64,000 bases of DNA from Zootoca vivipara (taxonomy: Eukaryota): contig NC_083282.1 in the NCBI RefSeq assembly GCF_963506605.1, positions 39,370,001 through 39,434,000 on the forward strand, written 5' to 3'. The notes below the pieces were generated by a model that searched no databases, had not been told where the DNA came from, and saw only the letters and a program-made list of their open reading frames with translations. Below are positions 32,205-34,230 of this stretch, piece by piece (within the stretch, counting starts at the first letter, position 1; each line of letters begins with the position of its first letter). Made by a program: the position numbers and the translations under genes.

Positions 32205-32597
32205 CTAGTCCATAACATCTCCATACTTGTTCCTTTTTGCACCGGCCTCTGTCTCCTTCTGGGGGTCCAAGTGGGGCACTTTCTCTTTGGCTACATCTGG
32301 GACACTGGGTTGTTTGCTCTCCAGAAAGATCCATAAGTCAGAACACTTCTGTGTCTCCCATCGAGTCATTGTATAGCTTGCAACTGAACCTGCAACAAAG
32401 GAGAGCAGGATGTTCCACTGGAGCGGGTAGTGAATCTTCCGGATGAATTTTTGAAGAGCAAAAGCCATCCCAGAGACTGCAAAAAATGCCCCCATGCCTT
32501 TCATGAATGCATAAGACTGGCAGGCCGTATATTCTTGTAGCCCTGGGTGCTTGGCTGCCACCGCTTCGTCCACGCGAGACAACCCCACGTTCACCAT
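32205..32597 (-). CDS. TMEM141: Intronless TMEM141 (transmembrane protein 141) retrocopy with an intact 130-aa ORF; candidate functional retrogene
   Basis: [34 protein letters not shown]...[37 protein letters not shown]...[10 protein letters not shown] runs uninterrupted, whereas human TMEM141 is multi-exon and lies in a different synteny block. Strong Kozak context (gagATGG). Upstream acceptor at 32696-32695 and GTAAGT donor at 33820. Confidence 0.9.
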
Positions 32598-32809
32598 CTC
32601 TGCTGCAGATGAGGGTAAGTGCTGGCCTGGAACTCTCCAAGCAGCACACTCCCTCCTCCACCTGTGCCTTGGGCCCCTGAGATCCTCTGAGGTGCTAAAA
32701 TGAGAAATTAAGAGTTCAGAGAGAAGACCATTAGCAATCACATAGTTTTCAAAACTTATTTCTCATCTGCATGGTTCACTCAAAGATTTATTGCTAATCA
32801 GTAGAGACA

Positions 32810-33164
32810 GGTGACCCAGGTGGCGCTGTGGGCTAAACCACTGAGCCTAGGGCTTGCTGATCAGAAGGTCGGCGGTTCGAATCCCTGTGACGGGGTGAGC
32901 TCCCATTGCTTGGTCCCAGCTCCTGCCAACCTAGCAGTTCGAAAGCACATCAAAATGCAAGTACAGTAGATAAATAGGAACCGCTATAGCGGGAAGGTAA
33001 ACGGCGTTTCCATGTGCTGCTCTGGTTTGCCAGAAGCGGCTTTGTCATGCTGGCCACATGACCTGGAAGCTATACGCTGGCTCCCTCGGCCAATAATGCG
33101 AGATGAGCGCGCAACCCCAGAGTCGGTCACGACTGGACCTAATGGTCAGGGGTCCCTTTACCTT
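32810..33164 (+). mobile_element. Full-length Sauria SINE in the putative TMEM141 retrogene 5'UTR intron
   Basis: Same family, with TSD TAGAGACA on both sides. Confidence 0.9.
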
Positions 33165-33799
33165 TAGAGACATGGGAAACTCTAAGAAGTTCCAATAAAC
33201 CTTAATTGTTTTTTCATCCATCTGGCAGTAGAGTTGCTCTACTATCATATTGCTTGTGCTGAAATCAAACTACATTCCTCCTGCTGGGAGCAAACTTGGA
33301 GGAATAATTTCTGTCCACTGCCTTGCGGGACAAATCAGGAGCGGAGTTCCTAAGATGGTTGGATGGTGCCTTGTACACCTCCTTCCGTCAACTCCTGCAG
33401 CCACCTGTAGTGTCAAATGTACTGTTTTGCTTTCCTTTGGACCACATCAGCGAGGCCCGAGAGGGGGATTGTGTTTTGTTTTCTGAGCAGCCCAGGGCCT
33501 CCATAAACGCTCCTCAGAATTGCGCCCTGGGAAGGTCACTTTGGTGCTGTATTGTCTTCACCACCGGAGGAGCACTCCATTGTCTCTCGAGGCGAAGGAA
33601 AGCGAGGCCGAGAGGGGCCGAGAGCTTGCGCTCTTCCATTGTCTCTCGAGAGGGACGGATGCCAACAACATTATATATTGGATATTTTAAAACACTATAT
33701 TGTATATATTAAATATTTAATTATATATCTATTTTTTAAAACAAACAAACAAAACAAAACAAAATATGTTTTAAAATATATCGAAATTGCACAAAGAAA

Positions 33800-34230
33800 A
33801 CAGAGGCACATCTCACTTACTTCCTCCCCCTTTTCTACCGGGACTCCGTAAGAAAGTAAACTTCCGCTTAGAGAACGGTTGACTGAAGCGCCACACAGAC
33901 GACGGACGCGCCAAATTAACGTCACTGAAGCTATTCCCTGCTCTTGGCCACGGCAGCAGGGCTCCCTGGGATAGCATCCGGGAACTGAAGCAGTTCCCAT
34001 CCGCTAGCAGCATGATGGGAGGGCGAGGGATGATGTTCCATTCAACGCGGGAACAGCTAAACGTATGTATGAATGCGCGCGCATTAAGCACATGTGCACG
34101 AACACCCGAATGGAGCTAATGCGTGTTTGCGCAACTTCACCTCATGCTTCAGAGGTATCAACAGATTCCTAATTCCTCCCTTTGGCAAGTGGGCGGGGGA
34201 CCCTCACTGTGGATTGGCTCCAATAAACCC
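33800..34230. promoter_or_regulatory. CpG-rich putative bidirectional promoter (TMEM141 retrogene on -, NDC1 on +)
   Basis: CpG cluster with ETS-like ACTTCCGC (about 33860-33867), E2F-like CGCGCCAAA (33907-33915), GC box GGGCGG (about 34191) and ATTGG/CCAAT (about 34213-34224). Minus-strand donor GAA|GTAAGT at 33820. Confidence 0.6.

Follow-up and report, generated by a model that had tools for sequence, protein, structure and literature searches.

To our knowledge, almost all orphan retrogenes described so far come from mammals and flies. They are rare: a mammalian survey counts ten families, nine of which came to use promoters associated with CpG islands, whether evolved or recruited (Carelli et al. 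2016, PMC4772013), with RNF113A, MARS2 and TRMT12 among the examples (Ciomborowska et al. 2013, as cited in Carelli et al. 2016, PMC4772013). The same source lists 11 human and 12 mouse retrocopies that lie head-to-head within 2 kb of a coding gene (PMC4772013, Fig. 2E-F). In amphioxus, a single-exon SYCP1 retrogene took the place of a parent with several exons and made use of regulatory elements nearby, among them a bidirectional arrangement (PMC5803294).

How does the TMEM141 gene of Zootoca vivipara compare with these systems? The gene itself is already annotated as TMEM141 in lacertids. We consider it likely that it is a retroposed copy of a spliced TMEM141 transcript which came to lie beside NDC1, is expressed through the CpG island of that gene and, its parent probably having been lost, now stands as an orphan retrogene. 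As such it would belong with the known orphan retrogenes that have taken over a neighbour's bidirectional promoter. In the literature searched, no paper was found that ties TMEM141 to a retrogene origin, and TMEM141 was absent from the top-ranked lizard papers. Within the window, by which we mean the whole 64-kb stretch of DNA that was analysed, the reading frame is laid out as follows.

32205-32597, minus strand: TMEM141 coding sequence, 130 codons and a TAG stop in one unbroken exon, assigned by its translation and a PF15110 match

Read from 32597 down to 32205, the stop-free frame encodes 130 amino acids before its stop and opens in the context gagATGG, and its product matches the PF15110 TMEM141 profile over positions 1-91 of 91 (E 7.3e-36, 123 bits vs a cut-off of 27), which bears out the intact, intronless TMEM141 frame described in the earlier note. 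Among the best 120 of 196 matches, annotated TMEM141 proteins from frog to lacertids are 57-95% identical to the protein of this locus, those of Podarcis and Lacerta reaching 95%. Nothing else in the 64-kb window resembles TMEM141 beyond chance level; a 23-aa stretch at 62590-62658 (minus strand; 43% identity, E ~0.03) has dissimilar flanks and was rejected as a chance match.

The substitutions in the coding sequence point to purifying selection. Against a ~4%-diverged relative, pN/pS is ~0.27 (8 synonymous and 8 non-synonymous changes, binomial p 0.011) and so not near 1, the value that had been named beforehand as speaking against a functional retrogene; this is a simple count over a small sample of 16 differences, out of at most 20 listed, from one contig. 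The frame is intact in five lacertid species, and both the N-terminal motif and the C-terminal KRNKYGDV of TMEM141 are kept from frog to lacertid. In a relative-rate comparison with Rhineura, using squamate outgroups, the lacertid branch is the longer one with 15 vs 8 changes, a difference that is not significant, and thus no sign that change sped up once the gene had moved.

What became of the intron-bearing parent? Among the matches listed, the annotations of five lacertids (Z. vivipara itself, L. agilis, P. muralis, P. raffonei and P. lilfordi) offer no further TMEM141 protein: all lacertid TMEM141 proteins found there are at least 95% identical to the locus, and the next match is that of Rhineura at 77% (best 120 of 196). 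On the basis of protein annotation, the multi-exon parent has probably been lost in lacertids. The earlier proposal that the parental gene was replaced thereby receives indirect support only. The alternative that survives best, though we regard it as unlikely, is that the copy is indeed a retrogene but the multi-exon parent persists, either unannotated or in a poorly assembled part of the Z or W, in which case we would be dealing with an ordinary duplicate instead of a replacement. The parent's absence is read from annotated proteins alone, within the best 120 of 196 matches, and GC-rich regions of small chromosomes are often assembled poorly, both of which would accommodate a surviving parent; the step from at least 95% in five lacertid annotations to 77% in Rhineura among the matches listed, together with a strong conservation and a pN/pS of 0.27 that fit a gene bearing the function on its own, argues against it.

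In this lizard, TMEM141 is located between YIPF1 and NDC1. For its position elsewhere we compared, within one assembly at a time, the lengths of the records carrying TMEM141 and a neighbour gene, which shows whether two genes share a record and not whether they are adjacent; NDC1, YIPF1 and DIO1 were queried or recognised via single stop-free ORFs. The genes share a record in Podarcis, TMEM141 and YIPF1 both lying on the 100,096,178 bp record of P. raffonei, and TMEM141 and DIO1 both on the 96,959,041 bp record of P. lilfordi. They are separated in Rhineura (TMEM141 on 22,298,196 bp vs YIPF1 on 158,443,526 bp), in Hemicordylus (TMEM141 on 16,604,388 bp vs DIO1 on 322,367,141 bp) and in X. tropicalis (TMEM141 on 147,241,510 bp vs 153,961,319 bp for the compared neighbour gene). 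Records of 16-27 Mb carry TMEM141 in Rhineura, Hemicordylus, Elgaria and turtles. The DIO1 query retrieved few squamates because of truncated selenoprotein models, and it was the YIPF1 ORF that gave the decisive Rhineura record; a comparison in Pogona, with TMEM141 on 11.8 Mb and YIPF1 on 241 Mb, was set aside, since two different assemblies had supplied the proteins. A shared record in Podarcis and different ones in Rhineura, Hemicordylus and Xenopus place the move on the lacertid lineage after the worm-lizard split. This agrees with the lineage-specific relocation suggested in the earlier note, the event being dated between the separation of lacertids from worm lizards and that of Lacerta from Podarcis.

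Transcripts of the gene define the following features.

33821-33867, minus strand: non-coding exon 1 at its minimum extent, 47 nt joined to exon 2 in contig X7
32695-33820, minus strand: 5'UTR intron, 1126 nt, GT..AG, with the joint 32694->33821 in X21, X22 and X7
32598-32694, minus strand: 5'UTR part of exon 2, 97 nt from the acceptor, with the RNA joint at 32694
32144-32204, minus strand: short 3'UTR with a proximal end beside ATTAAA at 32152-32147, cleavage site approximate
31987-32143, minus strand: 3'UTR extension of a longer transcript form (contig X1, 31987-32694), with a repeat-derived tail at its end and AATAAA at 31985-31980
32813-33166, plus strand: SINE-like repeat in the 5'UTR intron, highly repeated, outside the transcript

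Sense transcription of TMEM141 is seen in the stranded run X22, in contigs X1 and X7 and in the GT..AG junction. Depth over the coding sequence in X22 is 40-106 with the first mate on the plus strand vs 0-6 on the minus strand; run X21 contributes few reads at the locus, with a mate orientation opposite to that of X22. The 5'UTR intron had been predicted from the letters, with an acceptor 97 nt upstream of the start codon, a consensus donor at 33820 and a junction 33821>32694, and all of this is found exactly in the RNA: the joint 32694/33821 skips 1126 nt and reads CT..AC on the plus strand, that is GT..AG on the minus strand. The first exon-2 base after the acceptor (...tctcattttag|CACC) is 32694, 97 nt 5' of the ATG, and the last exon-1 base before the donor (GGAA|GTAAGT) is 33821. 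Support for the joint is modest, comprising 7 reads from the two raw-read runs (one in X21; six in X22, with 3 starts and 56 nt on the shorter side) and one contig, X7, from a related species ~4% diverged, with 47 nt on the far side; contig X1 ends exactly at the acceptor base 32694. As had likewise been foreseen, the spliced leader has no ATG upstream of the coding sequence, either in 33960-33821 or in the 97-nt exon-2 part. Exon 1 starts further upstream than 33867, at a point probably below about 33960.

At the 3' end, molecules start at 32151-32155 in X22 and contig X7 ends at 32144, marking the proximal site. Beyond it, the segment 31980-32016 recurs many times across the transcriptome and is flanked by loose ends. 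Reads cross-map to the intronic repeat by the thousand, their loose ends falling at 32813 and 33165-33166; ARAGORN found no intact tRNA in it, and an Rfam scan of 31000-35000 returned no matches.

Exon 1 of TMEM141 lies in a CpG island, close to the first exon of NDC1.

33800-34199, no strand: CpG island and candidate shared divergent promoter region of TMEM141 (minus) and NDC1 (plus), from its CpG observed/expected ratio, motifs and opposite transcripts
~33964-34062, plus strand: NDC1 exon 1, 5' end approximate, ATG at 34012, GTATGT donor from 34063

Over this island of ~400 bp, CpG o/e is 0.83-0.95 and GC 0.53-0.55 in 200-bp windows, as against a CpG o/e of 0.12-0.28 in the neighbouring 200-bp windows of 33200-33399 and 34200-34799; in the AT-rich stretch 33600-33799 (GC 0.31) a CpG ratio of 1.51 is uninformative. 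With opposite transcripts on either side, the island matches the CpG-rich promoter facing NDC1 on the other strand that the earlier note had described. Its list of promoter motifs held in part: the minus strand does have the ETS core (CGGAAG, 33866) and something like an E2F site (TTTGGCGC, 33915), but the GC-box and CCAAT/ATTGG motifs near 34190-34225 lie within NDC1 intron 1 and outside the gap between the first exons. Plus-orientation RNA reads and contig depth in bin 33964-34074 mark NDC1 exon 1, which would be joined from its donor at 34063 to exon 2, recognisable from 36441 onward. The two first exons lie at most ~150 bp apart, head-to-head in one CpG island; a distance of <1 kb in a shared island is what characterises a bidirectional pair. 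Across the two raw-read runs, TMEM141 and NDC1 are both higher in X22 than in X21, although two runs are too few to be read as co-regulation. We infer that the promoter is shared by the two genes, rather than their being merely adjacent.

An alternative, which we hold to be decidedly improbable, is that the NDC1-side exon 1 is a minor divergent by-product and that the working TMEM141 promoter lies inside what we call the intron, for example at repeat-derived first exons near 33200-33660 as in Podarcis models, so that nothing would have been captured from NDC1. The P. lilfordi and P. muralis models do have extended N termini, translated from the equivalents of ~33200-33460 and ~33500-33660 and joined to the acceptor found here, and X22 depth is low in the exon-1 bins (33742-33963). 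However, among the joints listed, the acceptor at 32694 is reached solely from 33821, in two runs of this species and in a transcript assembled from a related one, and depth in the TMEM141 orientation is near zero across the intron outside the repeat. Since some of the 5' exons annotated in Podarcis fall within the intron, TMEM141 may have a further promoter besides that on the NDC1 side.

By which mechanism was the copy made? Human TMEM141 is a multi-exon gene at 9q34.3. At least two intron positions within the coding sequence, after ~residue 66 and ~residue 103, are apparent in other species from annotated isoforms rather than from genomic DNA. In the cordylid Hemicordylus, isoform X3 skips residues ~67-103 and X1 has a 28-aa insert after ..DVAK; isoforms of the tortoise Chelonoidis vary at both positions, those of Xenopus diverge at the second (~residue 103), and those of mammals, less precisely, a few residues before it. 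At the locus, the coding sequence runs continuously across both. TMEM141 is thus multi-exon in other tetrapods, another lizard included, as the earlier note had held for the human gene, and the cordylid and tortoise isoforms together with the outgroup records speak against an ancestrally intronless TMEM141 at this position across sauropsids. No A-rich tract follows the 3'UTR, and no flanking direct repeats of at least 10 nt were found around 31900-32830; the decay of such traces is expected for an insertion older than the Lacerta/Podarcis split, and their absence makes for less proof of mechanism, leaving the assignment to the processed-retrogene class unaffected. Retroposition is accordingly a mechanism that we infer from the absent introns and the new location alone. 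A DNA-level move followed by stepwise loss of all coding introns, or an ancestrally intronless gene with gains elsewhere, would suit the lack of any poly(A) tail or target-site duplication to attest an RNA intermediate, but is barely tenable given at least two intron positions common to frog, tortoise, mammals and a cordylid lizard, which make the introns ancestral, given that all of them are gone at once in lacertids, and given that no gene of the ancestral neighbourhood travelled along, the flanks being YIPF1 and NDC1. This combination, every intron missing together in a gene that has moved alone, is what ordinarily marks a processed copy.

Our analysis suggests the following scenario for the retroposed copy. 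After worm lizards (Rhineura) had branched off, a spliced TMEM141 mRNA would have been reverse-transcribed in a forebear of the lacertine lizards and inserted between YIPF1 and NDC1, antisense and ~1 kb upstream of the latter, retaining its full reading frame. Divergent transcription from the CpG-island promoter of NDC1 would then have given rise to a first exon, short and non-coding, with its last base at 33821; the intron behind it, today 1126 nt long, ends at an acceptor lying 97 nt 5' of the ATG, and the copy may have become expressed because this exon was supplied. Purifying selection acts on the resulting gene, which lacertid annotations name TMEM141, and the intron-bearing parent, on a small chromosome in other reptiles, was probably lost, which would leave an orphan retrogene to do the ancestral job.

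The ancestral neighbours of TMEM141 are presumably the genes of 9q34.3 and GGA17. The gene content of the lacertid Z is homologous to GGA4p and GGA17, whereas blanids and teiids have these genes on autosomes (PMC6534595). We tentatively suggest, as an idea somewhat more likely to be wrong than right, that the lost parent sat on the GGA17 (human 9q34) homologue within the lacertid Z and that the move to an autosome fell on the branch of ZW origin, later than the divergence from worm lizards, an 'out-of-Z' rescue of a dosage-sensitive or W-decaying gene; the 16-27 Mb records that carry TMEM141 in Rhineura, Hemicordylus, Elgaria and turtles fit this idea. In that case the event may date from the time when the lacertid Z arose, and gene traffic off a ZW chromosome would become directly testable in squamates. 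More generally, the lacertid 'TMEM141' is not positionally orthologous to the TMEM141 of other vertebrates, and it represents a well-resolved reptile case in which the promoter source and the new 5'UTR intron are pinpointed to the base with support from RNA.

Relative to canonical vertebrate TMEM141, the lizard gene belongs to the same family and has in common with it the N-terminal MVNxGLSRVD..AAKHPGL and, outside mammals, the C-terminal KRNKYGDV, but it has no coding introns and sits on another chromosome with another promoter. With the mammalian orphan retrogenes, which are broadly expressed via a CpG-island promoter (PMC4772013), it shares the intronless copy, the new locus and a CpG-island promoter; loss of the parent, to judge from protein annotation, is probable in the lizard as well. 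It differs in its lineage, the Lacertidae, and in the gene, TMEM141 not being among the families named in the portion of PMC4772013 drawn on here. Like the retrocopies with bidirectional promoters in that portion (PMC4772013), it stands head-to-head with a neighbour, NDC1 being of the housekeeping type, and promoter and copy are connected by a newly acquired non-coding 5' exon and an equally new 5'UTR intron; its body is now ~1.2 kb away, owing to the ~350-bp repeat in the intron. Amphioxus SYCP1 would be alike in the replacement and in the use of neighbouring regulatory elements, with phylum, gene and neighbourhood all different (PMC5803294).

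Is the TMEM141 copy between YIPF1 and NDC1, with its single coding exon, an intact gene? Its reading frame on the minus strand (32597-32205) runs through 130 codons without interruption to a TAG stop and matches the whole Pfam model PF15110 (TMEM141; E 7.3e-36, 123 bits vs a cut-off of 27), bearing out the intact, intronless frame described in the earlier note. The start codon is flanked by G at both -3 and +4; 97 bases 5' of it lies an acceptor, a polypyrimidine tract with AG, which makes 32694 the first exon base, and a donor, GGAA/GTAAGT, is found at 33821/33820 (-). As had also been predicted, the spliced 5'UTR is free of upstream ATGs: on reading the sequence, none occurs in the 97-nt leader or in the 140 nt upstream of the donor.

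The minus-strand junction proposed between these two sites is matched exactly by RNA. Two (X21, X22) of three RNA-seq runs found for the species (X21-X23), an assembled contig of the same species (X1) and one from a relative about 4% diverged (X7) were placed on window 31300-34600. The junction 32694->33821, which skips 1126 nt and reads CT..AC on the plus strand, that is GT..AG on the minus strand, is present in six reads of X22 (three different starts, a shorter side of 56 nt), in one read of X21, and in the X7 contig, which covers 32144-32694 and then 47 nt at 33821-33867; X1 covers 31987-32694 and ends precisely at the acceptor. Support for the junction is modest. Over the coding sequence, X22 depth is 40-106 where the first mate is on plus vs 0-6 where it is on minus, the pattern of minus-strand RNA in a stranded library, and with both contigs this substantiates the expression that had been proposed. 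In X21, the first mate falls on minus, opposite to X22, both in the few 5' reads (32521-32742) and in the one junction read; both runs come from one study, and the read numbers of X21 are too low to separate library strandedness from antisense RNA.

The 5'UTR intron is empty of reads apart from 32813-33166, where thousands of reads derive from a dispersed SINE-like repeat and end loosely at either border. In Podarcis, the models of P. lilfordi (236 aa) and P. muralis (X1 version 2, 210 aa) have N-terminal extensions which translate from the equivalents of intronic 33200-33460 and 33500-33660 (-), implying alternative, partly repeat-derived first exons joined to the same acceptor; among the joints listed for Zootoca vivipara RNA, with 27 more beyond these, none starts from either stretch. 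An Ensembl P. muralis model (111 aa) follows the coding sequence as far as ..NKQPN and then runs into the equivalent of ~31870-31905 (-) (..VNVQFLV), which would be a minor isoform with a donor inside the retrogene coding sequence. Transcript 3' ends cluster at 32144-32155, beside ATTAAA (32152-32147), and a longer form reaches ~31987, its AATAAA (31985-31980) being supplied by a repeat-derived tail. Past this form, a 36-nt stretch at 31980-32016 (wider 31962-32076) shows RNA-seq depths of hundreds to tens of thousands; the loose ends that flank it run into (TAA)n at one border and into a conserved repeat body at the opposite one. The stretch resembles the 3' tail of a dispersed LINE/SINE in the same orientation as TMEM141, and it provides the distal AATAAA. 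As no more than this tail is found here, the simpler account is a very short independent insertion. Beyond the 3' end follow the last part of YIPF1 (+, ORF 27514-28047), then DIO1 and LRRC42. In the expected YIPF1 intron, a 249-aa ORF (25991-26740, -) resembles, by eye, the C-terminal part of a LINE reverse transcriptase; runs of N at 57560-57700 and 58850-59010 are assembly gaps or masked stretches.

At its 5' end, the transcript probably begins in a small CpG island (33800-34199; CpG observed/expected 0.83-0.95, GC 0.53-0.55) flanked by 200-bp windows with ratios of 0.12-0.28 (33200-33399, 34200-34799); the value of 1.51 for the AT-rich window 33600-33799 is uninformative. NDC1 is encoded on the plus strand, with exons recognisable from 36441 onward. 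Because an exon-1-like ORF runs from 34012 to a GTATGT donor at 34063, and the bin 33964-34074 contains reads oriented as plus-strand RNA as well as contig depth, the first exons of TMEM141 and NDC1, the latter predicted, diverge from this one island at most ~150 bp apart, in agreement with the proposed promoter facing NDC1. Among the motifs that had been listed for it, the ETS core (33866) and the E2F-like site (33915) do lie in the island, whereas the GC-box and CCAAT-type motifs lie further on, at ~34190-34225. The two genes probably share this promoter. In NDC1 intron 1, an inverted repeat at 35289-35438 has 64-nt arms, 89% complementary and 22 nt apart; a peptide common to the surrounding ORFs of either strand recurs at several places in the window (40734-40874, 47963-48148), which points to a dispersed foldback-type element.

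For the ancestral gene structure, splice junctions were read from annotated protein isoforms of other species. In Hemicordylus capensis, an exon skip removes from isoform X3 precisely the stretch that aligns to window residues ~67-103, and a segment either retained or alternative adds 28 residues to isoform X1 between ..DVAK and EKVP... One Chelonoidis model varies at the first place (~67) and diverges at the second (~103), where isoforms of both Xenopus species also diverge; mammalian isoforms do so a few residues ahead of it. A four-residue insert after ..AAKHP in Lerista hints at a third intron. Judged from these proteins, tetrapods had coding introns ancestrally, and a scincoid lizard has kept them. 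The window copy is continuous across all inferred positions, so the contrast drawn earlier between an intronless copy and multi-exon relatives holds. Neither a poly(A) remnant nor a target-site duplication was found around the copy, unsurprisingly at the insertion's age, so that the RNA intermediate remains an inference. Directly after ATTAAA, where a retrocopy A-tail would be expected, there is a G-rich run (32119-32146, -; GGGCGGGGGGGGTGGGTGGGGCG) that varies in length between individuals, X1 lacking 5 nt.

Place and timing follow from record lengths, compared for two genes within one assembly as a test of whether they share a chromosome.

Records bearing TMEM141 and its present neighbours
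P. raffonei: TMEM141 100,096,178 bp; YIPF1 100,096,178 bp; same record
P. lilfordi: TMEM141 96,959,041 bp; DIO1 96,959,041 bp; same record
Zootoca vivipara: TMEM141 96,056,580 bp
Rhineura floridana: TMEM141 22,298,196 bp; YIPF1 158,443,526 bp; different records
Hemicordylus: TMEM141 16,604,388 bp; DIO1 322,367,141 bp; different records
X. tropicalis: TMEM141 147,241,510 bp; DIO1 153,961,319 bp; different records

In turtles, TMEM141 is on records of 26-27 Mb vs 109-113 Mb for DIO1/YIPF1, but these are different species of one family. Thus, the relocation is common to Lacerta, Podarcis and Zootoca vivipara and absent in the worm lizard, upholding a lineage-specific insertion and placing the move on the lacertid lineage after the amphisbaenian split, in a sample without Gallotiinae, Eremiadini and teiids.

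The copy has since been kept by selection. Against X7, the 16 coding differences listed, with at most four more beyond them, comprise eight synonymous and eight non-synonymous changes (pN/pS 0.27; binomial p 0.011 vs a neutral site ratio of 306:84), five lacertids have an intact ORF, and the conserved motifs at the N- and C-termini do not change between frog and lacertid; a relative-rate test against Rhineura gave no significant acceleration. At 32568, a synonymous G>A (codon 10, GAC>GAT) is found in all X21 and X22 reads and in X7, not in X1 or the assembly, and is either a polymorphism within the species or a derived allele in the assembly. Every lacertid TMEM141 protein found shares at least 95% identity with the window copy, the next among the matches listed being Rhineura (77%); hence no intron-bearing parent is annotated in lacertids among these protein matches, and elsewhere in the window nothing resembles TMEM141 apart from one chance-level match. 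This absence from annotation is suggestive of parental loss, not proof.

The ancestral neighbourhood of the gene is presumably that of human 9q34.3, and TMEM141 lies on small records in outgroups. Chicken 4p and 17, corresponding to human X and 9, are the homologues of the lacertid Z, whose genes are autosomal in blanids and teiids (PMC6534595). In view of these three points, the parent may have lain on the proto-Z, which would make the retrogene an out-of-Z relocation on the same branch as the sex-chromosome origin.

We came across no paper that describes TMEM141 as a retrogene; as a gene it is publicly annotated already, under the name TMEM141. The retrogene observation is confirmed and its interpretation supported. 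According to Carelli et al. (2016; PMC4772013), a neighbour's bidirectional CpG promoter, head-to-head within 2 kb, is used by 11 human and 12 mouse retrocopies, and ten families of mammalian orphan retrogenes, processed copies left as the only functional ones, replaced their parents, 9/10 with CpG-island-associated promoters. The lacertid copy fits the first of these classes and, if its parent is lost, also the second, and the account of amphioxus SYCP1 (PMC5803294) presents a similar retrogene replacement with co-opted neighbouring regulation.
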